Shown here one piece after another: positions 3,461 to 60,661 of a stretch of DNA of 64,000 nt. The position numbers and the translations under genes are program-made. The notes under the pieces were generated by a model that saw only the letters and a list, made by a program, of their open reading frames with translations, was not told where the DNA came from and searched no databases. The stretch lies in the sequence record MZ475895.1. One strand, 5' to 3'. Position 1 is the stretch's first letter; each line of letters begins with the position of its first letter.

Positions 3461-6400
3461 TTACGCAGTACCTGAACCTGGGGTAGAAGAACCATAGGTC
3501 AGTTTGAACGTATACGCCAGATTATCAAACGGGAAGTCGTTGCGGTAAACAACATAGTCCACGCCGTTAATCTGAACTTCCGCAGGACCTGCAAAGTTGA
3601 AGTCGTCAAACTCCAACGCGCCATCCCATGAACCAGCAAAGCCCTGTGCAGACTCCACGAAGTAACCGTAACCCAGAGACTTAGGCCACGCAACGTAGAA
3701 GAACACGTTGTTGCTACTTGTACTGGTGTTAGCAGGGCACGTCAGCGTCTGTTGACCGCTAAGCGTCAGCGCATTTTGCAGACCAGAAACGAACTGTGCA
3801 TCGTAGTTCGTAACAGAGGTCACCTTAGTGCGATAGCCGAAGCGAGCACCCAGGTCAGCAACCTGCTCTTTCTTCAACGTCACGTCTTTGGTTGCAGTCT
3901 TGCTTACACCGTTCTTGGTATAAGTCAGAGTGATTGTGACAACAGCATCAGCAGTCACTTTGTCAGACTTGAGCAAGCCGCCTACAACGCTCAGGCCAGT
4001 AGCAGTACCAGACTTAACAGCAACAGACCACACGCTACCGCTATCAGCAGTTACGTCAGGCGTGGTGCCATCAGACATAGTAGCAGTACCAGTGTACTGA
4101 GTGTTCACGCCGCCGATGATTGAATCACTACCAGTGATAGTAACTGAATCAGGCGTTGCTGGTGCAGGCGTGTTCGTTACAGTCAGGTTCGCAGTTTGCG
4201 CTTGGCTGTTATACGAAGCAGTACCAACGATGATCGTCTGTTGTGCGGACGTCACAGTGTTACCAACGATCTTGTCCGTGCCGTTAAACGTAAACGCAGT
4301 AGAGCTACCGCTTGAACGACTAACAACAGGAGTCAGGTCAACCGTGCTACCGCCAGAAAGAGTCAGACGCAGAACATAAGTACCGGTCTCACCTTTGTTG
4401 ACAGCAGTTGGACCCACCAGCTCGCGCTTAGTGATAGTCTCAGCTTGGTTGATAATCTGAATCGTTTTCTCTGGCGTGTATGCTGTACCATCAACAGTGA
4501 CGTTAGCAGCACGCAGCATTGCGGTTTGGTTCTGGCTGATCGTGTTCGCAGGAACATTAACTTTCGTGCGACTTGCGGTCGTACCAGACTGCAACTGAGC
4601 ATACGCAGCACCCTGAGGCAGTGTCCACGTTGGGTTAGTCGCGGTGTATTCTACCACAGTGCCTGACAGACGAGTCACACGCACATAGTATTCACCAGCA
4701 GTACCTCCCTCAGTGATTGAGTCAGGACCCACAATGTCTACAGTGCTTACGGTGTCAGTCGGACCAGTTACAGTGAAGCTAACAGTACCAGTCTTCGTCA
4801 CGCCACCAACAGTTGCAGTAACGTTGATAGTGAACGTCAGACTTCCGTAGAACCCGTTAAGAGCTTTCGTGGTACGAATGCGCCAGCCAGTTGTTCCACC
4901 AGCAACGATCTCGAAATACTGAGCAGTCGCAGCAGGCAAGGTGTAGCTGAGTTCCGCACTTGTGCCTTCACGCGTAGAGTTATCGCTGAACGTCAGAGTG
5001 CTATGCAGGTCCTTCGCAGTCTGTGCAGCATCGTTAAATGCATACGCAGGCGTAGGAGCAGCAGGCTGAACGGACAGCAGACTGATAACAACCACGTTCT
5101 TGATCAACACGGATTTCTGTGCAGTCAAGCCACCAGCAGTCGCACGAATCAATGCAGTGCTATCCTGAGTTACTTCGCCAGCAGTCAACACACCCGTTTG
5201 AGCGATTGATGCGAACGCGCTACCCTGAATAACTGACCACGTAGGTGAGGCCACCTGAACTTCACTTCCATCACTGTAGATTGACCATGCAGTGTATGGG
5301 CTGGTGGAGTTCTCGTTCATCTGGTCTGCGCCACGCACTTCCAGACTAACAACAGTCGGTGGGTTACCAACGATTGATACAGGCAGCGTTGCAGTCTTCG
5401 TAATACCGTTTTCAGTATACGAGGCGTAGATGGTCACGCTGGACGTAGCGACAGGAACAGCACCAACAGTCAACGTTGAGTTATCGAATGTAGCGTACTG
5501 GTTAGTCGCTTGCAGACGGAACTCATTCGGGCTAACTGTTTCGGTATGACCATCAGAGTAAGTAGCAAGTACGGTGTAACCCGTCTGCGTCTTCTCCTGC
5601 ACGGATGATGGACCGATAATCTGAATCTTCGTCAGGTCAACAACAGGCACCACATTGACGACAGTCAGATTGAGCGTAGCGTTGACCGTGTGCGTACCTT
5701 CTTTATAAGAAGCGGACAGCACGACAGGAACGTCAGCAGTCACAGTACCAGCAGTAACGGTCTTGTTGACGATGGTCACAATATCCAGACGGTCAGCAGT
5801 AAACGTCAGAGGGTCAACGGTACGCGTGTGGCCATCAGAGTAAGTAGCGAGGAACGTGTAGTTCGCGCTCTCACCGCTGCGAATCGTGTTCGCACCCTGA
5901 ATCGCCAGAGCAGTAACGAAGATCTCTTCTGCTTCATGGATGATTGTGATAGGCTTGGTGCCTGTAATCGTCTGCGAGCCTGACGTGTAACTTGCATTCA
6001 GCGTAACAGCGCGATCTTGTGCTGTCTCTTTGCGTGCAGTAACGACATTAGCATCGATAGCGGTGTAGGTAGCAGGAGACGCTGTGAATGAATTGGCGGT
6101 TACCATTTCAGTGTCACCGTTCGACCAAGTTACCTTGAACGTGTACGAGGCAGAAGCCTGTGACGCGATGGTATCTTGTCCGAGAATCTCCAGCTTAGTC
6201 ATCACCTGCGCCTTGACTGTTACGTCTTTGGTCGCTGTGAAATCTACGCCGTTATAGGTGTACGTTGCAGTCAGAGTAGAAACGGTATCAGTCGCAACTT
6301 TCTGTGCGGTACCCACCAGACCAACAAGCGACAGCACATCCGTTTTAGATGAGGTGAAGTTATTAGGCTGGACAGTTGCAACAGCGCCTGACTTATAGCG

Positions 6401-7474
6401 AGCAGTCACGCTGTAGGTTTCTTTCTGCTTGTACAACAGGCTGCTAGAACCAATGATGGCGATAGATACCAGCTCATCATTTGGGATGAATGCGTTCTTA
6501 ATCAGCAGGTCGTAAGTAGCTGTTACCGTATTGCCGTACACAGGGTCAATCTTGGTCGCAGTCACTTTGAGAACTACGTCAGCAGACAAATCAGGAGCGG
6601 TAACAGTACCGTCTTCTGAGATAGTCACACCGATAACGTTCTCTTGAATCGTCCACACAACGCCAGTAGGATTGTGCTCGATACGGTCAGACCATTCAGC
6701 GTCGATAGCCAGCTTAACGCTAGAGTTATCTGACATGTACGAAGCTGAACCAGGCAGGCTGATACGCAGATTCATTAAGTGAGGAGATTCCCACTCAACG
6801 TTGTCTGACACAGGCTTGATCCACTTACCAATGTATTTGTTCGCATTGGCTGGGTCCTGATCAACGATTGCCAGAACGTAGCCAGGCTGCGGCTGATTCG
6901 AAGAAGCTACCTCAACAAACGCTGAGGAGTTAAGACGAATCATCGTGCGAGGATAGTCTGGATGATCGTGATTGGTCGGATAGCGTGGGTCTGACATACG
7001 TGGGTCAGAGCCAGATACCGCAATAGGGTCTTCTGCATCAGCAGGGTCCGTCTTCGTCTGCACACTACCGATACGATTCGTAGTAGCGTGAGGGATTTCG
7101 AGATCCCCTTCTTCGATGCCCAGGTCACCAGCATTCTCCACAACGCGGCGGAAGAACTGCTTAGAGTTAAACAGCGAAGCGTAGTCAGGAACGGACACCC
7201 AAGAACCACGGTGATTGCCGTCAGACACATGGCTGGTGCGGCGCAGCACATACTGATACTGTGGGCTGCCTGAGTTAGCATCAATCCAAATCAGATTGTA
7301 TGGCTTCTCAGAGAATGACGGCTCTGTCAGCGACACTACAACTTGATACACATCGGTCTGATCGTTCGCATTGGGACGAAACAGGAACGTGATTGGGTTG
7401 CGTGGAGTCAGGCCGCGAGTACGGGCCAAAGCGATGTACTGCTTGGCGAATCCGTCAATGGTGGTCACACTCAT
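3461..7474 (-). CDS. Large Ig-like-repeat fibre protein (tail fibre / hair / adhesin)
   Basis: 1337 aa; about ten ~95-aa repeats (xLxIxGxxxI...YxxxAxYSDG...VTLxASYT...TATxxVTI); N-module shared with 7471..8103 and 8114..8752; C-module shared with 8788..9474. Confidence 0.75.
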   Translation of the reverse strand: MSVTTIDGFAKQYIALARTRGLTPRNPITFLFRPNANDQTDVYQVVVSLTEPSFSEKPYNLIWIDANSGSPQYQYVLRRTSHVSDGNHRGSWVSVPDYASLFNSKQFFRRVVENAGDLGIEEGDLEIPHATTNRIGSVQTKTDPADAEDPIAVSGSDPRMSDPRYPTNHDHPDYPRTMIRLNSSAFVEVASSNQPQPGYVLAIVDQDPANANKYIGKWIKPVSDNVEWESPHLMNLRISLPGSASYMSDNSSVKLAIDAEWSDRIEHNPTGVVWTIQENVIGVTISEDGTVTAPDLSADVVLKVTATKIDPVYGNTVTATYDLLIKNAFIPNDELVSIAIIGSSSLLYKQKETYSVTARYKSGAVATVQPNNFTSSKTDVLSLVGLVGTAQKVATDTVSTLTATYTYNGVDFTATKDVTVKAQVMTKLEILGQDTIASQASASYTFKVTWSNGDTEMVTANSFTASPATYTAIDANVVTARKETAQDRAVTLNASYTSGSQTITGTKPITIIHEAEEIFVTALAIQGANTIRSGESANYTFLATYSDGHTRTVDPLTFTADRLDIVTIVNKTVTAGTVTADVPVVLSASYKEGTHTVNATLNLTVVNVVPVVDLTKIQIIGPSSVQEKTQTGYTVLATYSDGHTETVSPNEFRLQATNQYATFDNSTLTVGAVPVATSSVTIYASYTENGITKTATLPVSIVGNPPTVVSLEVRGADQMNENSTSPYTAWSIYSDGSEVQVASPTWSVIQGSAFASIAQTGVLTAGEVTQDSTALIRATAGGLTAQKSVLIKNVVVISLLSVQPAAPTPAYAFNDAAQTAKDLHSTLTFSDNSTREGTSAELSYTLPAATAQYFEIVAGGTTGWRIRTTKALNGFYGSLTFTINVTATVGGVTKTGTVSFTVTGPTDTVSTVDIVGPDSITEGGTAGEYYVRVTRLSGTVVEYTATNPTWTLPQGAAYAQLQSGTTASRTKVNVPANTISQNQTAMLRAANVTVDGTAYTPEKTIQIINQAETITKRELVGPTAVNKGETGTYVLRLTLSGGSTVDLTPVVSRSSGSSTAFTFNGTDKIVGNTVTSAQQTIIVGTASYNSQAQTANLTVTNTPAPATPDSVTITGSDSIIGGVNTQYTGTATMSDGTTPDVTADSGSVWSVAVKSGTATGLSVVGGLLKSDKVTADAVVTITLTYTKNGVSKTATKDVTLKKEQVADLGARFGYRTKVTSVTNYDAQFVSGLQNALTLSGQQTLTCPANTSTSSNNVFFYVAWPKSLGYGYFVESAQGFAGSWDGALEFDDFNFAGPAEVQINGVDYVVYRNDFPFDNLAYTFKLTYGSSTPGSGTA

Positions 7475-51669: not shown

Positions 51670-52947
51670 CTACTTCTTCTTTTTCTTCTTCTTGGGCTTT
51701 TCGTCTTCGTCGTCATCTTCGACTTCGTTACCCAATTTCACAGACAGCTTGCCTTCATAAATGTCGGCCATCAGACTGAGGATAGTTGATTCCAACATAA
51801 TGTCAGCAGGCACGGAGGTACTGTTGAATGCTACCTCTGCTTCTGCCAGTGCTTTCTGCAAATAGATCAGGCAAACAAGATTGACCTTAATCTTCTCTTG
51901 CTTAACCATATTCAGGAACATCTTGAGGCCAGCAGACTGCCACTTGTTTGTGTCAGAGTAATGACCGAGTGCACCGTGAAGTACCCAGCGTGCTTTCGCT
52001 ACGATTGCTCGTGGGTTGTTTGCTTCACGCAGGAACTGAATGACGCCGATAAGATCCATCGCAATGAACGCACCGATAGTCTGAACTGCTTTGCCTTCCA
52101 TTTCGATTTCTGGATCGGCTGCCGCAAGTTCTGCCACCAGCTTCTTATCAAACGCTTCACCACCTTTAACTGACGCAAAGATGTTTTGCATCATCGTGAT
52201 TGCACCACGCATCTGACCGCCTGAATACTCGGCAACCTGATGCAACGCTGATTCAGCTTTATCACGCGCTTTATCTTTCTTAGGCATGATGCCAAGAATA
52301 TCAGCGATCTCTGACAGACGCTTCGCAATGATGTCAGTAGGAATCGGCCTGATAGGAAGTTGTGTCATACGACTGATCATCGTATCTTTCATCTTCTCAG
52401 GGTTCGTGGTCACAAAGATGAACACGACATGCGCTGGTGGTTCTTCAATGATCTTGAGGAACTTCGATTCGGCTGCGCTCGACATGAGGTGCGCTTCATC
52501 GAGAATGAACACACGGCGCTTGAACATAGGTGCCAGAGGTGCTGAGTCAACGATGCGCTGCGAGCCTTCAACTTTACCAGAGTCGCTACCCATATCGAAC
52601 TCTTGCACGTCAGGGTGCTGGCCGTTGTTGTACATCATGCGACACGAGGCACACTTACCGCACGCGCTAAACGAATCACAGTTGATGTACTTTGCGACGA
52701 GACGCGCAAACGTTGTTTTGCCGCTACCCAGATGACCTGTGATAATCATCGTTGATGGAACTGTTTTCGACTTCTGCCAACCGTTCATGATCTTGACGAT
52801 GTGGTCTTGGCCTACATAGTCTTCGATACGAGTCGGTCGGAACTGAGCGGCAAAGTTTACCGTAGTCAGTTCAGTAGAAGATTCGGACTTGGAACTATCT
52901 GAACCAAAGTCGCGTTTCTTCTTCTTTTTCTTTTCTTCTTTCGCCAT
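51670..52947 (-). CDS. dnaX: DNA polymerase III gamma/tau-like clamp loader ATPase
   Basis: FRPTRIEDYVGQ, GHLGSGKTT, Zn motif CDSFSACGKCASC, ILDEAH, LKIIEEPP, ISR (SRC-like). Confidence 0.9.
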   Translation of the reverse strand: MAKEEKKKKKKRDFGSDSSKSESSTELTTVNFAAQFRPTRIEDYVGQDHIVKIMNGWQKSKTVPSTMIITGHLGSGKTTFARLVAKYINCDSFSACGKCASCRMMYNNGQHPDVQEFDMGSDSGKVEGSQRIVDSAPLAPMFKRRVFILDEAHLMSSAAESKFLKIIEEPPAHVVFIFVTTNPEKMKDTMISRMTQLPIRPIPTDIIAKRLSEIADILGIMPKKDKARDKAESALHQVAEYSGGQMRGAITMMQNIFASVKGGEAFDKKLVAELAAADPEIEMEGKAVQTIGAFIAMDLIGVIQFLREANNPRAIVAKARWVLHGALGHYSDTNKWQSAGLKMFLNMVKQEKIKVNLVCLIYLQKALAEAEVAFNSTSVPADIMLESTILSLMADIYEGKLSVKLGNEVEDDDEDEKPKKKKKKK

Positions 52948-53298: not shown

Positions 53299-53337
53299 AA
53301 CATCTCCTGAATATTAAACCTCAACGTTCTTGAATTA

Positions 53338-53346
53338 TGTTTACAG
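53338..53346 (-). promoter_or_regulatory. CTGTAAACA motif
   Basis: 40 nt upstream of 53298. Confidence 0.5.
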
Positions 53347-53392
53347 ATTGCTTCGGTCCGTCCTTGCGATCTAAAGTCAGAATAGTCTTAAA

Positions 53393-53639
53393 CTCCAATA
53401 AGCTCTTGTTAGAACGTATTGGAGTCCACCCTGTCAGATGACGGTCGTTCAGGGCTTTCTCCCCGCACACTTATATAGCGCCGTGCGGCAGGCTGCGCTC
53501 GCGAGGTCTTATGTTTTCCACGGCAGGTGGTCCAGGAGGTAGCGTCCTCTGAAAAGATACCCGCCGCACAACAGCCTCGCTATCGGCCAATCAGCGATAC
53601 GCGGTGTTACGCTGAATCGACCTAAATGACTCTGGCCGA
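53393..53639 (-). ncRNA. Candidate structured non-coding RNA (multiple helices, predicted pseudoknot); family unknown
   Basis: ORF-free GC-rich gap with at least five complementary pairs; several mismatches become G.U wobbles only on the minus strand. Confidence 0.5.
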
Positions 53640-53650
53640 GTCGTGTACAA

Positions 53651-53703
53651 AAAAAAGAGTTCGGTCCCAATCAAAAAGATGGCGAAAAAGAAAGGGACCG
53701 AAC
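53651..53703 (-). terminator. Hairpin plus U8 tract (terminator/attenuator) upstream of the candidate ncRNA
   Basis: Perfect 10-bp arms GTTCGGTCCC / GGGACCGAAC, 25-nt loop, followed by UCUUUUUUUU on the minus strand. Confidence 0.6.
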
Positions 53704-53748
53704 AAAAGACACTCAGCGCAAACTCCTTATGCACTGTTTTTGTACTTG

Positions 53749-53758
53749 GGAAAATTAG
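53749..53758 (-). promoter_or_regulatory. Candidate late-type motif CTAATTTTCC
   Basis: Heads the non-coding gap; an AAGGAG element follows about 25 nt downstream. Confidence 0.35.
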
Positions 53759-53785
53759 TGACATTCCCTTTTATTCAGAAAATTC

Positions 53786-54361
53786 TTAGTCGATGGTTAA
53801 TTGCATCTGACGCAGAGTTTTGAGAAAATGTCTGCGTTGGAAAGATTCGATGCGGTACGGATGATCGATATGTTTGTTCCAGCCCTGATTAAATAGCATA
53901 ATGTTGTCGGGCAATTTCTCGGCACCATTCCACTTCGGTTTATCATCTACAAGCAGGTAATTGCCTGCACCATGAACCGAATCAAGGAACGCAATTTTAT
54001 CAGGGTAAATCATTGGACTAATCACATGGAAGTGGTCTATCACGTGGAGAAGTCCGCGCATCGCTAGACGCGAGTAACGAGTCCCAAGTTCGTGATAGCC
54101 GCGATGAGTGCAAACACCAACAGAGTAACCCTGCTGCACAAGATACTCCAGTGTGCCCTTTGCGTACTGACGCATACGCGCATCGAGCATGAACGTCGGA
54201 CTGTTCAGTATCTCACTGAAATGAATACCACCATTCTCAGGCGTAATGTATTCACCTTCACCGATAGTAACTCCTTTGTCAGCGAGTTTCTTACGCATCA
54301 CAGGGTGGGTCTCGAAAAACGTATCATCCAAATCGAAAAAGATTTTCTTTAGCTTTTGCAT
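53786..54361 (-). CDS. HAD-superfamily 5'(3')-deoxyribonucleotidase-like protein
   Basis: IFFDLDDTF, VCTHRG, DK, LLVDDKP. Confidence 0.8.
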   Translation of the reverse strand: MQKLKKIFFDLDDTFFETHPVMRKKLADKGVTIGEGEYITPENGGIHFSEILNSPTFMLDARMRQYAKGTLEYLVQQGYSVGVCTHRGYHELGTRYSRLAMRGLLHVIDHFHVISPMIYPDKIAFLDSVHGAGNYLLVDDKPKWNGAEKLPDNIMLFNQGWNKHIDHPYRIESFQRRHFLKTLRQMQLTID

Positions 54362-56261: not shown

Positions 56262-56774
56262 TTAACGAGGAATGTAATCAGAGACGTTAGCTTCCTTAGC
56301 GTCTGCTGTACGGTGGCGAATCAGGCGGCTAGTTGTATCTGCTGGTGGGAAGCAGACAATAGGCTTGACGACCATGACTGTCAGTTGTTGCGGCCACATG
56401 TCGTGATCGATCATACGCGAGGCAATAATATGTGCGGCGCGTTCTGCATCTTCACGTAAATGGTCAAACTCCAACAGCAACACCTGAGGCTTCTGATCAA
56501 TCTCGTTAACAGCATGATCAAGTTCCATCAGGTTCGTAGCAACATAGCTTCGGCAAGGCAGCGTTCCAGAGTAATCACGCGGTCCGATATAGACAACGTT
56601 CTCTGGGTCAACATCATCGATTGCATTGCAGATGAAATCAGGGACGAACTTGCCCAAGTCCCCTTCCAGTGCGACAAAAGACATATCAAAAGGATCGTGC
56701 CTCATAACGGTCATGACAGCACGTCCATAGCCAGACAGATAGTTCATCAGTCTGTATACGAGATCACTATGCAC
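56262..56774 (-). CDS. Hypothetical protein
   Basis: 170 aa; GAGG RBS. Confidence 0.55.
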   Translation of the reverse strand: MHSDLVYRLMNYLSGYGRAVMTVMRHDPFDMSFVALEGDLGKFVPDFICNAIDDVDPENVVYIGPRDYSGTLPCRSYVATNLMELDHAVNEIDQKPQVLLLEFDHLREDAERAAHIIASRMIDHDMWPQQLTVMVVKPIVCFPPADTTSRLIRHRTADAKEANVSDYIPR

Positions 56775-56785
56775 GTTAACCTCTT

Positions 56786-56941
56786 TTAGAATGCGGGAGT
56801 GTAGGTGTATTTGCGCTTCTTCAACTTCGCTGCCGCGTGTTCACGGTCTAAGTCGTCGAAGATACCTACCCGTCGGTGGTAACGAAATTTCGGATGAACG
56901 GAAATATGTTTGACGATAGCACTTACGGGTTCGGTAGGCAT
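56786..56941 (-). CDS. Small basic protein missed by the ORF track (MPTEPVSAIVKHISVHPKFRYHRRVGIFDDLDREHAAAKLKKRKYTYTPAF)
   Basis: 51 aa; GAGGTG RBS; fills the intergenic gap exactly. Confidence 0.6.
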   Translation of the reverse strand: MPTEPVSAIVKHISVHPKFRYHRRVGIFDDLDREHAAAKLKKRKYTYTPAF

Positions 56942-56952
56942 ATATCACCTCG

Positions 56953-57969
56953 TTACTTGTACTGTCCCGTCACAACAAAGACGAGAGAATCAGGTTTCTT
57001 CCGCCCGTTAACAATGAGATACTTGAACGGACGTGTGGGTTCAAGCTGGCCTTCGACCACTTGAGTGATTGCAATATCTTTGACTTCACCAAAGGTCAGA
57101 GCGTTGTCCATCTGATCGAAGGAGAAGGCATTTGAAAGCGAAACAGAGTTGTGAGACTCTACCGTAATACCTTCAGGCTTCTTGGAGGCACTACGTTTCG
57201 AGTCCAGCCACTTCTGCCAATCGAACATCGCATGGTTCATTGAACGAGAGACGAGCGAACGGGGCACTTTCCCTTTCAACGATTTGCGAAACTCGGTCAC
57301 AACTTCCGACACAGGAGGACCAGCATTAACGCGACGACGATCTTTCAGAATCGTGCGCATCTTATCAGACCAGTAGTTGTAGGCATCAACTCGAATCTGA
57401 ATGTATTCTTCAAGGCGCTGAGCCTGTTCGAGGGTACACTCAATTTCGAACGTCACCTGACTTCCACGTTCTGTACCGTTGTGTTTGATAGCAGCTTTCT
57501 CTGCTTTCGTCTCGCTGATCAGTTTTTCTTTTACACACGCCGCCCATGCATATGCAAATGTGAGACGCATGTCAGGATAACGGTTCATCACCTGCACGCG
57601 TGTTTGAAGCAACAACGGAATGGCATAGCCCAGATGACAACGACGATCAATAAAGGCAGAACGGAGTTCTCCAATATCTTTGTCCAGCTCGTTGAGGTCA
57701 TTGAACAAATAACCCGAGTCACGGTACGACTGAGAAATGTGGTTACCTTCACGAAGTACATCGTCGATGGTCAAACCTTTTTCAACGATGCTGTTGTATG
57801 CTTCTTCCAAAGTAACATCAGGCCAAGTGCGATAACCTGTTTGGTCTAAAGTAAGATGACGGAAGCAATACAATTCATACATGTGCAAAAAGTCCGCGAA
57901 TGGCAGACTTTTGGGATATACGAATTTTTTAATCACCTTCTTCGGTTTGATAACTGCTTTCTTGATCAT
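56953..57969 (-). CDS. Protein with a C-terminal TnpB/Cas12f-like WED-REC lobe and no RuvC
   Basis: TFEIECTLEQAQRL...RVDAYNY has the same TxEQ...L...YN spacing as HTH_OrfB_IS605; ends exactly where RuvC-I would begin. Confidence 0.5.
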   Translation of the reverse strand: MIKKAVIKPKKVIKKFVYPKSLPFADFLHMYELYCFRHLTLDQTGYRTWPDVTLEEAYNSIVEKGLTIDDVLREGNHISQSYRDSGYLFNDLNELDKDIGELRSAFIDRRCHLGYAIPLLLQTRVQVMNRYPDMRLTFAYAWAACVKEKLISETKAEKAAIKHNGTERGSQVTFEIECTLEQAQRLEEYIQIRVDAYNYWSDKMRTILKDRRRVNAGPPVSEVVTEFRKSLKGKVPRSLVSRSMNHAMFDWQKWLDSKRSASKKPEGITVESHNSVSLSNAFSFDQMDNALTFGEVKDIAITQVVEGQLEPTRPFKYLIVNGRKKPDSLVFVVTGQYK

Positions 57970-59659
57970 TGCGTTCTCGCTGGAGTTTGGCGGCTATTTT
58001 GAGATATTCTCTATTTACAGTTTCTGGGTCTGTAGCGAACCCTCGCTTAGTGAAAAGGTTACGCTTGACCTTACCCATGCTATAGCCGTTATCCCAGAGT
58101 TTCATGAATATCAGACAGTTTAACGTCGGGTCCATGAATGGTTTTTCTTTCAGAGCAACGTCACCAGAATACTTGGTCAGCAGGATAGCGCCGTCGAACT
58201 CTGCGCTACACCACTCGGCCTCAGCTAAGACCTTGAGCAGGTTGTAATTCTCCATACCCTGAATCAAATGACTAAGGATGGTATACTGGTCACGCTTGTA
58301 CCGAGCAACAGGAACTCGATGCGAACACCCCGAAGCATTTTTGAAGAAGTGATCTGTCGTGCGAGAATAAGAGGCGTTCTTAATTCTCAGGCACAACTCC
58401 TCAACGACAAGAGATGCAGGCTCGAACATAGCCTTCCACTTACCCCAGATGCGGGTGGCATAGTTCTTGATTTCTTCCTCTGTCATTTTGTACTTCTTGC
58501 CTACGTTTTGTACCTTAGTGTCAGATACAAGTTGACGGAAAATATCCGTCATCATAGCGCCGGGATCTTCCTTTTCCGAAGAGGTATCAAACGTCTGTTT
58601 GAAATACCTCTGATTACTCCACCCGCTATATATGCCGCCGTAGTTCAAAGTCTTGGACGTGCCCCTCGTGATCTTTAGCGTCTTCGCCACGTAGTCATGG
58701 TCAAGATGTTCAAGCATCGGACATTCGAGGCCGTACTCCGACATGAGGTCTAGCAGCAAAACAATCTGAGCATTCGGCATATCAAAGTTACGACCATAAG
58801 AGTGATCGAAACATAGCAGCTTAACAATCTTCGGCAGTGCAGCCGCTGTACCGAATAGACGACTACCAACATGGTTCATCGAATACTCGTCGTAGAACTC
58901 CACCAGCCTATCATTCGGGTTATCGTTGACAAGACGTAACCCAAAGCGGCAAATCTTCTTCAGGAAAGAATCAAGGCGCATGTGCAAACCGTAACGTCGG
59001 TTAGTACGAGCGTTCTCCTTAATGTCCAAGAAGCGGTCCAAATAAAATCTATAGGGACGCTGATTAGCCTGAGCACGATTGATAAGCTCAATCACTTCCC
59101 TGTTCTTGCTTTTGTGGTAGATAAAGTTATGAGGGCGTCTAAACGGCTTCGCCTTCACTTCTTTTTCAAAAGCGGCAGCAACCAAGTCATCCTGTGACTG
59201 AAAAATCGCCCTGCGACGATTCGGCTTCAACAAATTGTACATGGGCTCCTCAAGAGCACACAAATCTGCTAAAGTTTGGGCAAGAACGGTGTTAAGCGAA
59301 TACTTACGGGCGATCCCCTTAATGTAATCAAAGCGGGTTTTGTTCACCTTACGGTCTAACCACAAGCGAACACCGTCATTTTTCTGACGAACCATCGCAT
59401 AACGCATCTTTTCATGAGCCCGCATGTAACTATAGGTCACTACGGTTTCATTATAGACGTTTCGTTTCTCCATCATGCGGGATTTATCGATCAAATGGAT
59501 GAAAAACCACGCCAAACTTTCGTAAAACTTATCTGATTTAGCGCCTTTCGGCTTGGGGCACTGATAAATCATGTCCCAGAAATACTTATGAAAGGATTTA
59601 GGTACCGCGCCCGCCCATCCTGGGGGCACAGCTTTCTTCCCGTACACGGGTTTGGCCAT
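57929..59659 (-). CDS. Divergent PolA/T7-RNAP-superfamily polymerase (TV-Pol-like)
   Basis: GSRLF, NFDMPNAQ (motif A), RGTSKTLNYGGIY (motif B), LIQGMEN, AEFDGAIL (motif C) in canonical order. Confidence 0.6.
   Translation of the reverse strand: MAKPVYGKKAVPPGWAGAVPKSFHKYFWDMIYQCPKPKGAKSDKFYESLAWFFIHLIDKSRMMEKRNVYNETVVTYSYMRAHEKMRYAMVRQKNDGVRLWLDRKVNKTRFDYIKGIARKYSLNTVLAQTLADLCALEEPMYNLLKPNRRRAIFQSQDDLVAAAFEKEVKAKPFRRPHNFIYHKSKNREVIELINRAQANQRPYRFYLDRFLDIKENARTNRRYGLHMRLDSFLKKICRFGLRLVNDNPNDRLVEFYDEYSMNHVGSRLFGTAAALPKIVKLLCFDHSYGRNFDMPNAQIVLLLDLMSEYGLECPMLEHLDHDYVAKTLKITRGTSKTLNYGGIYSGWSNQRYFKQTFDTSSEKEDPGAMMTDIFRQLVSDTKVQNVGKKYKMTEEEIKNYATRIWGKWKAMFEPASLVVEELCLRIKNASYSRTTDHFFKNASGCSHRVPVARYKRDQYTILSHLIQGMENYNLLKVLAEAEWCSAEFDGAILLTKYSGDVALKEKPFMDPTLNCLIFMKLWDNGYSMGKVKRNLFTKRGFATDPETVNREYLKIAAKLQRERNDQESSYQTEEGD
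58012..58020 (-). promoter_or_regulatory. CTGTAAATA motif upstream of the TnpB-lobe gene
   Basis: 43 nt upstream of 57969, inside the upstream CDS. Confidence 0.5.
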
Positions 59660-59693
59660 CTTGGAACCTCAAAAAGCTCGTTCTCTTGGCTGA

Positions 59694-59702
59694 TCTTTAC
59701 AG
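59694..59702 (-). promoter_or_regulatory. CTGTAAAGA variant upstream of the divergent polymerase
   Basis: 35 nt upstream of 59659. Confidence 0.45.
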
Positions 59703-59715
59703 AATCCTGCTTGTT

Positions 59716-59955
59716 CTACGTCAGAGACTCAAATTCTATCAGATAGTTGATTAGGTTAGGTAGATTAGGTATGGCATAGCATCTTATGCAGCATGAGCGC
59801 ACTATATTCACACGGAATACAGCCTTCTCTCCCAAATCCCTAGCGCCTAGACGCATATCCCTAGCCCACAGACATATCGTAGGGGTCGAAAACGCGAAAA
59901 CCGCTTTAGCATGGTTATTTGGTGCCAATTCAGCGGAATTGATTTCTAAGCGCAC
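59716..59955 (-). CDS. Possible small ORF (may be non-coding)
   Basis: 79 aa with a GTG start and weak RBS; region rich in short TAGG/CCTA repeats. Confidence 0.25.
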   Translation of the reverse strand: MRLEINSAELAPNNHAKAVFAFSTPTICLWARDMRLGARDLGEKAVFRVNIVRSCCIRCYAIPNLPNLINYLIEFESLT

Positions 59956-60001
59956 TTTGAGACTATTCTTATTGCCGTAGGTCGATTCTGTAGGAAAGTG
60001 G

Positions 60002-60661
60002 TTATTTTTTGCGCGAAATTTGCTGATTCAGTTTTTTGCCGATCTGCGTCAAAACGCGCTCAACGGTCTCTCCGTCACGCTCACCGATAGCCATAGCGAG
60101 CCTTTCGCCCTGTTCACGCGATAGCTCAGGCATAATCAGCTTGAGCATCTTTGATCGCGCCTTTGCAGACTTTGATTTGCCTTTTGACAGCGATTGCGTT
60201 TCCATTTCGGCAGCAACACGGCTCATTGTGCGCTGCACGCGACGATCTGCGAATATATCACCGAAGATATTGCCAAACAGGTCTTGGAACGAGCGTCCGC
60301 CACCAAATATCTCGTCCTTAGTGAAGCGCACTTCCTTTCCTAGCGCATTACGCTTAACGCTGTGCGTGCTTTCCACTTCGTTTTGGACGCGTGCACCTTC
60401 GATGAAGTTCTCATCAGGCCGTGATTTCTTACCTTCAGCACCGGGCTTAGTGACGCCGTTACGCAGCTCAGCACGCCCCTCAACAGCCGCATCAGGGTCA
60501 AACATGTCATCAGTGTTGACGCTCTGATTAGGGTCAAAGGGAATCTTGTCTGTCAGCTTGTTTTCATCTGGCCACGAACGAGGGATATCCGACGCAGGTT
60601 GAGGGCTATTCGTCATATCACCGTTCTTCTCGCTGTTCAGACTCACATAAATCTTGGTCAT
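60002..60661 (-). CDS. Putative head-associated protein with an SxS-type leader
   Basis: MTKIYVSLNSEK; internal QSLSK; low-complexity N-half. Confidence 0.55.
   Translation of the reverse strand: MTKIYVSLNSEKNGDMTNSPQPASDIPRSWPDENKLTDKIPFDPNQSVNTDDMFDPDAAVEGRAELRNGVTKPGAEGKKSRPDENFIEGARVQNEVESTHSVKRNALGKEVRFTKDEIFGGGRSFQDLFGNIFGDIFADRRVQRTMSRVAAEMETQSLSKGKSKSAKARSKMLKLIMPELSREQGERLAMAIGERDGETVERVLTQIGKKLNQQISRKK

Follow-up and report, generated by a model that had tools for sequence, protein, structure and literature searches.

A predicted TnpB-like recognition lobe without a nuclease, encoded beside a divergent family-A polymerase in Erwinia and Dickeya jumbo phages

The window analysed here, 64,000 nucleotides of record MZ475895.1, belongs to Erwinia phage pEa_SNUABM_14, a jumbo phage of 264 kb. 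The ORF list and the record annotation place the gene for a 338-residue protein (QYW04543.1) at 56953..57969 on the minus strand. The ORF is genuine, and every sequence string quoted from it in a preliminary description was located in the translation: VTFEIECTLEQAQRLEEYIQIRVDAYNYW corresponds to residues 171-199, VPRSLVSRSMNHAMFDWQKW...KKP to residues 235-265, and LTFGEVKDIAI to residues 291-301, beyond which only the final strands precede the stop codon. The upstream gene (phrog_30690; 57929..59659, minus strand), which specifies a protein of 576 residues, overlaps the 5′-end of the first by 41 nt, and both products are annotated as "hypothetical protein." Farther upstream lies an intergenic region (59660..60005, minus strand), defined from cassette boundaries and a spacer alignment, which is exchanged together with both genes.

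Nearby genes are concerned with DNA metabolism and include those for a clamp loader, a 5′-nucleotidase-like protein and a Holliday junction resolvase. The 338-residue protein gene occupies the same syntenic slot across four phage genera, and no transposase is annotated or was detected among its neighbours, as the preliminary description had stated in denying it a transposon setting. Neither the hallmarks of an IS200/IS605/IS607 element (TnpA, terminal hairpins) nor an adjacent CRISPR array was found at the gene. Its product is basic (pI 9.2) and belongs to a family restricted to Erwinia and Dickeya jumbo phages, with 13 clusters at 90% identity and seven representatives at 50%. Searches of Pfam, PHROGs, NCBIfam, PADLOC and the PDB with phmmer/hmmsearch gave zero matches for this protein. 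The sole recurring match, of a WxD...GK(R/H)P stretch to collagen-adhesin B repeats, was dismissed as a short chance motif.

The gene was said to possess its own CTGTAAATA motif, and this promoter-like element is indeed present on the minus strand at 58012-58020. It precedes the ATG by 43 nt and lies inside the 3′-end of the upstream gene, where it forms the codons for T-V-N. The window contains seven copies, all on the minus strand, where 0.44 would be expected. An exact copy precedes the orthologue by 41-51 nt in all ten loci examined, from Snuvirus to Salmondvirus and including two metagenomic contigs. With a conserved promoter-like motif of its own, the gene can be expressed apart from its upstream neighbour. 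A variant, CTGTAAAGA, lies at 59694-59702 (minus strand) within the intergenic region; alignment of orthologous spacers reveals conserved blocks and AGGGAT(A/T)T repeats in this exchanged segment.

The protein has a helical domain at its N terminus and, at its C terminus, a domain that resembles the REC lobe of TnpB. The N-terminal domain (residues 1-165; 57475..57969, minus strand) was delimited from AlphaFold2 (AF2) secondary structure and alignments. Residues 1 to about 20 are Lys-rich and disordered, and residues 24-163 are all-helical in the model; the family alignments reveal the conserved motifs DFLxxYE, YRTWP, GxAIPLL and YxW. No relatives of this domain were found in Pfam, PHROG, NCBIfam, PADLOC or the PDB, and its hhalign scores against either half of TnpB (11-16) are at background. 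The earlier view that a domain of unknown type is fused to the TnpB-like half is supported.

The C-terminal domain (residues 166-338 plus the stop codon; 56953..57474, minus strand) was assigned by Foldseek against PDB and BFVD, and by hhalign. The AF2 model of the whole protein, built on an alignment of nine sequences, has a pLDDT of 76.8 overall and about 80 in this domain. In the model the domain consists of a strand, β1 (171-177), a helical insertion (180-256, with helices at 180-207, 221-230 and 237-256) and a β-barrel (282-337), that is, a WED barrel with a helical REC segment inserted between β1 and β2, as in a REC lobe (domain boundaries as defined in PMC10097598). The 12 best PDB matches of the model are all Cas12k, TnpB, Fanzor2, Cas12f or Cas12n (E from 0.0095 to 0.46, probability 0.6-1.0), and a target-normalised TM score of 0.64 was obtained with 8ex9_A, a structure of ISDra2 TnpB that resolves the REC lobe alone. 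In BFVD the top three places are taken by members of the protein's own family, and TnpB/Fanzor-type "transposases" or unnamed entries fill ranks 4-20; the Yoloswag and JA11 orthologues, modelled independently in BFVD, agree with our model. The structural E-values are modest, ranging from 0.006 to 0.5 and all exceeding 0.001.

Sequence comparison leads in the same direction. When the C-terminal half was compared by hhalign with the portion preceding RuvC in seven genuine phage TnpBs, 153 co-linear columns covering TnpB residues 7-167 were aligned with a score of 27.0, and the scores for the three remaining combinations of domains were 11-16, making the signal specific to this pairing. Plain hhalign of the family against the same seven TnpBs gave E = 0.011 and a probability of 3.8% (3.8-13.5% across the TnpB comparisons); because an unrelated control alignment reached E = 0.049, the raw E-value was not accepted and a column-shuffle null was used instead. 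In 300 shuffles the mean score was 12.9 +/- 2.8 and the real score was reached once (empirical P ~0.007, z ~5), so that the profile-profile similarity is weakly significant. No match at E up to 10 was found to the TnpB models PF12323, PF01385 and PF07282 or to NCBIfam TnpB, using as queries nine family members, isolated halves and three distant members, and the PHROG TnpB models also failed to match the protein.

The family-conserved residues E181/Q182, T225, R228, V235 and L239 fall near the TnpB-invariant E17/Q18, T61, K64, V75 and L80. Two of these are exact column matches (T225 with T61, V235 with V75); R228 lies one column past K64, at the second K of the conserved KK, and L239 is one column ahead of L80. 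S221, T225, P236 and R237 are invariant in the family, and R228 and S238 nearly so, all of them in the REC-like helices. Invariant R237 is aligned at the position of ISDra2 K76, and the P236-R237-S238 stretch with the TAM-reading K76/F77; K76 of ISDra2 TnpB reads the G of the TAM (PMC10097598). Of the motifs remarked on earlier, the "YN" pair is present in this sequence but is not conserved, being replaced by N, D or S in the Erwinia phages and missing in the Dickeya phages.

The protein ends one column before the RuvC-I motif IGIDLG, and a RuvC domain with its D-E-D triad is absent; the C-terminal half scores only background (12.3) against the RuvC half of TnpB. Neither of the two ORFs downstream, of 51 and 170 residues, gave a relevant match. 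The TNB/zinc finger (CxxC...CxxC) is also absent, the family possessing neither the C-terminal region nor the cysteine pairs. AF2, Foldseek and hhalign therefore support the architecture first suggested from the sequence, a TnpB/Cas12f recognition lobe (WED and REC) which stops where RuvC-I would start, and from the predicted structure we conclude that the C-terminal half is folded like the DNA/RNA-recognition portion of TnpB/Cas12 proteins, the nuclease portion being missing.

The product of the upstream gene was identified from its AF2 model (pLDDT 79.8), Foldseek and invariant residues. Its top 46 PDB matches are Pol I, Pol γ, Pol ν, T7 DNAP, DpoZ, T7 RNAP and POLRMT. Among 16 sequences D293 (motif A), K336 (motif B) and D489 (motif C) are invariant, as are H464, G468 and E470, and E487, which accompanies D489 in motif C; a second database search added no sequences to this alignment. 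Weak profile matches fall on motif B of Pol γ, and motifs A and B of T7 gp5 align in register. The model thus displays the right-hand palm, fingers and thumb of family A, and the Asp of motifs A and C and the Lys of motif B are in place. Pfam DNA_pol_A (PF00476) gave no match at E up to 10. A 3′-5′ exonuclease domain is not recognizable, the matches to DNA polymerases spanning some 310 columns that correspond to the polymerase domain. The steric-gate position is occupied by Q or H and motif C reads (F/H)DG, and the matches include both DNA and RNA polymerases. Judged by its modelled fold and invariant residues, this protein is a very divergent family-A polymerase with intact catalytic residues. 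The preliminary description overlooked the gene, which adjoins and is co-exchanged with that of the 338-residue protein, and which we regard as the decisive context.

The two genes are adjacent in 10 of the 10 loci in which the 338-residue protein is encoded, and the pair is found in Snuvirus, Yoloswagvirus, Rivsvirus, Salmondvirus and Alexandravirus-like phages. In the sister phage SNUABM_34, whose flanks are 98% identical, positions 56953-60005 are swapped as a single 3,053-bp cassette, the replacement carrying a polymerase of 23% identity and unrelated small proteins. Such exchange between near-identical phages is the pattern expected for functions in conflict with the host. We considered whether the 174- and 135-residue proteins of SNUABM_34 might be diverged halves of the 338-residue protein; BLASTP and hhalign indicated that they are unrelated. 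In the polymerase tree the TnpB-like partner is found on both sides of the deepest split. The sister phages pair the polymerase with the unrelated 174-residue protein, from which it follows that the enzyme can do without the WED/REC domain.

A structured RNA at 53.3-53.8 kb, 3.2 kb downstream of the gene, had been put forward as a ligand. This RNA is genuine and conserved (z = -6.3, 16 covarying pairs), but seven loci of related phages that lack the gene retain it at about 70% identity; there is therefore no specific co-occurrence, and we have abandoned the proposed partnership. The gene itself is separated by 12 nt from the next ORF downstream and overlaps the one upstream, leaving no adjoining non-coding DNA, and no guide RNA (ωRNA or crRNA) was found at or beside its 3′-end. 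The cassette contains no strongly structured segment (over 84 windows z falls no lower than -3.8), and an Rfam search of the locus gave zero matches. The upstream spacer of 342 nt was also considered as a guide-RNA locus and rejected, its folding being unremarkable (z = -0.11) and matches to σ70-type promoters being zero.

Several readings of these data were weighed. A domesticated RNA-guided or RNA-binding regulator, which would load a phage RNA to find its targets in the manner of TldR or dCas12, could be imagined from a fold that Foldseek places in an RNA-guided family, from the real structured RNA nearby, and from the precedent of nuclease-dead TnpB derivatives acting as regulators (PMC10691335; bioRxiv 10.1101/2023.11.30.569447). 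In TnpB, however, WED and RuvC jointly grip the scaffold of the guide RNA, and REC and RuvC between them build the channel for the heteroduplex (PMC10097598). With RuvC missing, no RNA candidate at the locus or in Rfam, and the downstream RNA conserved where the gene is not, we consider such a regulator highly improbable. It is distinctly unlikely, in our opinion, that the resemblance to TnpB is convergence or a modelling artefact, the C-terminal half being then a generic OB-fold with helices such as occurs in single-strand-binding or structural proteins. Foldseek E-values above 0.001, a shallow alignment, an hhalign signal with control background close by and the variable "YN" would all be compatible with it, but PDB and BFVD return only TnpB-superfamily proteins ahead of the noise, the topology (β1, helical insertion, remaining barrel) is specific, and the co-linearity extends over the full lobe and ends exactly at the REC-NUC linker, in addition to the result of the shuffling.

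A stand-alone, sequence-specific dsDNA-binding regulator of transcription or replication, acting independently of the polymerase, is rather unlikely. WED plus REC is the exact TAM-reading unit (PMC10097598), and the basic charge, the alignment of P236-R237-S238 with K76/F77 and the gene's own promoter-like motif would suit such a protein, for which the blocks and repeats of the exchanged spacer offer a possible candidate site. Against this stand the strict linkage to the polymerase and exchange with it as a unit, and no helix-turn-helix or other regulator signature was detected in the protein. The promoter element proposed earlier as its recognition target was rejected because CTGTAAATA persists, equally and in equivalent places, in phages lacking the gene, and forms a system independent of it. 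What stands of the proposal of a phage-domesticated, nuclease-free WED/REC module is thus the architecture, the absence of RuvC and the lack of a transposon; the RNA partner and the reading of promoter elements do not.

Constant adjacency and joint exchange with the polymerase point instead to a targeting module reused with that enzyme, and our preferred explanation, which we advance tentatively as having somewhat less than an even chance of being correct, is that the 338-residue protein is a nuclease-free, nucleic-acid-binding WED/REC partner or subunit of the upstream family-A polymerase, the interaction being inferred. In TnpB it is WED/REC that grips the TAM-containing DNA duplex and forms the lining of the guide-target channel (PMC10097598). 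As a partner, the protein would dock onto the polymerase through its N-terminal helical domain and accommodate a DNA duplex, a primer-template or a hybrid in its WED/REC cleft, and this binding might give the polymerase its site or substrate specificity, whatever its product may be. It is very doubtful, though conceivable, that a TnpB recognition lobe uncoupled from its nuclease directs a dedicated family-A polymerase to a specific phage or host site or substrate. Such an arrangement might employ a nucleic-acid guide, for example in site-specific priming or synthesis; as a variant, the family might be a relic of a stand-alone WED/REC protein that fused with RuvC to give TnpB. No paper describing the pairing of a TnpB-like module with a family-A polymerase was found in the literature searched.

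Compared with ISDra2 TnpB (PDB 8EXA/8EX9), Cas12f, Cas12k and Fanzor2, the protein has in common the REC-lobe architecture, namely an OB-type WED barrel with REC inserted after the first strand, as well as the length of the lobe (~170 residues) and the order of its elements, to which is added, in the case of TnpB, weak co-linear sequence similarity including the (T)xEQ start. Unlike TnpB, it lacks the whole NUC lobe (RuvC D-E-D, TNB/zinc finger and C-terminal domain), has an additional N-terminal helical domain of 165 residues, and matches no Pfam or NCBIfam TnpB model; its locus has no ωRNA, IS ends or TnpA, and is found at a single fixed syntenic position in jumbo phages. TldR, σ-associated dCas12f, Cas12k and Cas12m are modules derived from TnpB that have lost cleavage and been recruited to serve RNA polymerase/σ factor or Tn7 transposase, and some are phage-encoded (PMC10691335; bioRxiv 10.1101/2023.11.30.569447). 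These still have a RuvC fold, whether inactivated or trimmed, and a guide RNA encoded alongside, whereas the locus described here has neither, RuvC being absent rather than inactivated, and the machine associated with it is a family-A polymerase.

Single-subunit polymerases of the family-A type are known to employ accessory factors, such as thioredoxin (T7 DNAP), Pol γB, TFB2M/TFAM (POLRMT) and gp2 (N4 RNAP II). The likeness we propose is that of a small separate protein which may supply nucleic-acid contacts to the right-hand polymerase that it is encoded with or acts upon, although the 338-residue protein is related to none of these factors in sequence or fold. The TnpB/Cas12 derivatives in the literature surveyed all retain the RuvC lobe, including those in which it has lost catalytic activity. 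A naturally occurring protein that keeps WED/REC alone would show that the recognition lobe is an autonomous, transferable module for nucleic-acid recognition, and would offer a minimal scaffold of about 170 residues for studying DNA reading of the TAM/PAM type. That the protein is always found together with a second, uncharacterised polymerase suggests a two-protein function in nucleic-acid synthesis across this group of jumbo phages and, were the polymerase indeed guided, a targeting module would here be coupled to an enzyme of synthesis instead of destruction.

Erwinia phage pEa_SNUABM_14 (MZ475895.1) infects Erwinia amylovora and has a genome of 264,285 bp, with window positions equal to record positions minus 124,000. 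The TnpB-like gene (56953..57969, minus strand) specifies a protein of 338 residues, annotated as hypothetical (QYW04543.1), for which no match was found in Pfam, PHROG, NCBIfam, PADLOC or the PDB sequences. The strings quoted in the preliminary description are indeed present: VTFEIECTLEQAQRLEEYIQIRVDAYNYW at residues 171-199, VPRSLVSRSMNHAMFDWQKW...KKP at residues 235-265, and LTFGEVKDIAI at residues 291-301, beyond which lie the closing strands and the stop codon. The "YN" pair is not a motif of the family, being N, D or S in the Erwinia phages and lost in those of Dickeya. The family comprises 13 clusters in a collection of 5.8 billion proteins, yielded seven representatives when 1.84 billion were scanned exhaustively with an HMM, and is present in 22 phage records. 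Every named member belongs to a jumbo phage of Erwinia or Dickeya (Snuvirus, the Alexandravirus-labelled SNUABM_28/35/36, Rivsvirus SNUABM_5, Yoloswagvirus and Salmondvirus); the other clusters derive from metagenomes or assemblies, on contigs of phage size. Residues 250-272 (window ~57154-57222; W-x-x-W-L-D-x-K-R-x-x-x-K-(K/H)-P) weakly resemble the collagen-adhesin B repeat WxDxxNxxGKRP, a likeness that we judged to be chance; this stretch accounts for the sole PDB-sequence "hit" and, in the large search, for the retrieval of a repetitive protein of 1112 aa.

An AlphaFold2 model built from a nine-sequence alignment (mean pLDDT 76.8, approximately 80 in the C-terminal half) possesses a helical N-terminal domain (residues 24-163), a single strand (171-177), three long helices (180-207, 221-230 and 237-256) and five strands (282-337). 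The proposed likeness to TnpB and Cas12f was borne out when this whole-protein model was compared with the PDB using Foldseek: the 12 best matches all belong to the TnpB superfamily (E 0.0095 to 0.46, probability 0.6-1.0), including Cas12k, ISFba1 TnpB, mimivirus Fanzor2, AsCas12f, ISDra2 TnpB, Cas12n and dCas12f. The target-normalised TM score is 0.64 against 8ex9_A, an ISDra2 TnpB structure in which the recognition lobe alone (166 residues) is resolved. In BFVD the protein's own family is found first (itself, Yoloswag and JA11), these independent models agreeing with ours, followed by the TnpB/Fanzor "transposases" of chloroviruses, mimiviruses, klosneuviruses and siphoviruses. In ISDra2 TnpB, the WED domain is a beta-barrel (residues 1-12 and 117-176), REC (residues 13-116) consists of helices inserted between beta-1 and beta-2, and RuvC starts at residue 185 (PMC10097598). 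The phage protein has the same WED/REC topology and length, and ends at the REC-NUC linker. The TnpB-like fold of the C-terminal half is thus well supported.

For comparison at the sequence level, seven genuine phage TnpBs were fetched with a short consensus query and aligned. By hhalign, family columns 173-334 and TnpB columns 7-167 are co-linear over 153 columns (E 0.011, probability 3.8%), and the alignment ends just before the RuvC-I motif IGIDLG, which agrees with the earlier observation that the protein stops where RuvC-I would begin. Because an unrelated control alignment gave a nearby value (E = 0.049), both families were split into halves and scored against a null of 300 column shuffles. 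The C-terminal half against the pre-RuvC part of TnpB scored 27.0, a value reached by one of the 300 shuffles (12.9 +/- 2.8), while three other domain pairings and a reversed profile scored 11-16; the signal is therefore weak but specific (empirical P ~0.007). In this register conserved residues of the phage family coincide with, or adjoin, conserved residues of TnpB: E181/Q182 are paired with E17/Q18, T225 with T61 and V235 with V75, while R228 lies one column after K64, at the second K of the conserved KK, and L239 precedes L80 by one column. By this alignment the invariant R237 would occupy the position of K76, through which ISDra2 TnpB reads the guanine of the TAM (PMC10097598).

Neither RuvC, TNB nor a zinc finger was found in the family by alignment or hhalign, and the two downstream ORFs (51 and 170 aa) gave no relevant matches. 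As originally noted, there are no transposase genes or IS ends around the gene, which occupies an identical syntenic slot in Snuvirus, Alexandravirus-labelled, Rivsvirus, Yoloswagvirus and Salmondvirus phages. There is no room beside it for a guide-RNA gene, since the next ORF begins 12 nt past its stop codon and the upstream gene overlaps its start. No strong RNA structure was detected in the cassette: among 84 windows of 160 nt (56600-60100) the most negative z was -3.8, inside the polymerase coding sequence, and Rfam gave no match. Lacking most of the defining features of TnpB and TldR, the protein is a REC-lobe-only derivative or relative.

The upstream gene (57929..59659, minus strand) overlaps the start of the TnpB-like gene by 41 nt and encodes a 576-aa protein of phrog_30690, a family without an assigned function. 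Across 9 to 16 aligned homologues the invariants are G265-x-R267-x-x-G270, N291-x-D293-M294, K336 within TRGT(S/A)KTLNYGGIY, H464-x-x-x-G468-x-E470 and S485-x-E487-x-D489-G490-A491, which correspond, in family-A polymerases, to motif A (DYSQIELR type), motif B (RxxxKxxxFGxxYG), the IQG segment and motif C. When PDB sequences were searched with a profile, Pol gamma motif B alone was recovered, weakly (E 0.2-0.5); hhalign against T7 gp5 placed motifs A and B in register. An AlphaFold2 model (16 sequences, pLDDT 79.8) gave 46 consecutive top PDB matches of family-A type (best E 0.0013, probabilities ~1): Pol I (Klenow, KlenTaq, Bst, Aquifex), Pol gamma, Pol nu, T7 DNA polymerase, DpoZ, T7 RNA polymerase and POLRMT. 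From these motifs and matches, the neighbour is a family-A-type polymerase that has diverged greatly and retains its catalytic carboxylates; its steric-gate position is Q/H and its motif C is (F/H)DG, and the product may be either DNA or RNA. It is an accessory second polymerase, since this group of phages reportedly has a distinct replicative Pol I bearing a UDG domain, together with a beta clamp and clamp loader (PMC7412058). The clamp loader is encoded within the window. The module sits in a DNA-metabolism region, as judged from a clear clamp-loader match (DNA_pol3_delta2/AAA) at 51670-52947 and, at 53786-54361, a weak match to 5'-nucleotidases of NT5C type that falls below the Pfam cut-off (E = 0.00056); both lie on the minus strand.

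HMM scans of 25 loci indicate that the polymerase is universal in the phage group. Directly 3' of it lies the TnpB-like gene (325-390 aa) in 10 distinct loci, the alternative being an unrelated 174-aa gene (156 aa in locus L034). Phage pEa_SNUABM_34 is 98% identical to the window up to 56952 and again from 60006; the intervening 3,053 bp, containing the TnpB-like gene, the polymerase gene and a 342-nt upstream spacer, are replaced by 3,062 bp (3954-7015 of its locus, L006) encoding a 23%-identity polymerase and proteins of 174 and 135 aa, neither showing any relation to the TnpB-like protein. Being replaced jointly, the two genes behave as one exchangeable module. Such exchange between 98%-identical phages would fit a host-conflict function or replication specificity. 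The deepest split in a maximum-likelihood polymerase tree has full support; the TnpB-like partner is found on either side of it, the 174-aa partner on one side alone. If the midpoint root is right, this suggests an ancestral pairing, with the 174-aa protein having come in later as a replacement. The spacer 5' of the polymerase gene (59660-60001, minus strand; 342 nt) is unusually long, as in all relatives (330-500 nt), and is not unusually structured as RNA (z = -0.11). It carries the conserved blocks TGACACCAAATAACCA and TGTGAATATAGTGCGCTCATGCTGCAT and two AGGGAT(A/T)T direct repeats on either side of a short palindrome, and could serve the module as a cis site.

The evidence best supports a role for the protein as a subunit of the adjacent polymerase that binds nucleic acid and is free of nuclease, a reading that adds a presumptive interaction, ligand and product to the observed fold, RuvC loss, polymerase identity and genetic linkage. 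The WED/REC cleft would hold a duplex, as TnpB holds the TAM duplex, or a primer-template, and the novel N-terminal domain would dock the protein to the polymerase. Descent of the C-terminal half from TnpB is likely, though not proven, and a convergent OB-fold protein remains an alternative.

So does the RNA-guided regulator of the preliminary description, for which an RNA some distance away had been put forward as partner. This element of ~450 nt (53300-53785, minus strand), flanked on one side by the 5'-nucleotidase-like gene and on the other by a 70-aa ORF that precedes the clamp loader, has no Rfam family and is very likely a real non-coding RNA, judging from its very stable predicted structure (z = -6.3), compensatory changes in 16 of 116 predicted pairs and 84% mean column identity over eight phages, which exceeds that of the flanking genes. 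However, it is also present in phages without the TnpB-like gene, at ~70% identity in seven related loci (L028-L034) and 99% in SNUABM_34, so co-occurrence gives no support for a dedicated partnership. A stand-alone, sequence-specific DNA-binding regulator also remains. The promoter-like nonamer CTGTAAATA occurs seven times in the window (0.44 expected), always on the coding (minus) strand (14056, 22575, 39605, 40980, 49824, 52984 and 58012), ~37-43 nt upstream of start codons where checked, and has the appearance of a class of phage promoters similar to the T4 late TATAAATA. Contrary to the possibility entertained earlier, the TnpB-like protein is not its reader, since the motif is found at equivalent places in phages lacking the gene. 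The gene does have its own copy, as claimed, at 58012-58020, 43 nt upstream of the ATG and within the polymerase coding sequence; all 10 loci retain the nonamer unchanged, 41-51 nt upstream of the orthologue, although the proteins of the most distant members are only ~25-33% identical. The clade-1 polymerase tail keeps ETVNxEYxK amid variable surroundings (57990-58030), its T-V-N codons spelling the CTGTAAATA of the downstream gene, which probably explains this conservation; the segment is apparently under coding and promoter constraint together.

A full-text literature search found no description of a RuvC-less TnpB or of a TnpB-polymerase pairing; the sole mention was in a Fanzor survey, where candidates "lacking the RuvC domain" were dismissed as false positives or incomplete proteins. 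The known families nearest to the phage protein are TnpB, Cas12f and Fanzor2, and the nuclease-dead TldR, Cas12k and sigma-associated dCas12f; each of these retains the RuvC fold and has a guide RNA beside it (PMC10691335; PMC10097598). Unlike these, the phage protein has neither, and its interest lies chiefly in the isolation of the recognition lobe and its coupling to a polymerase.
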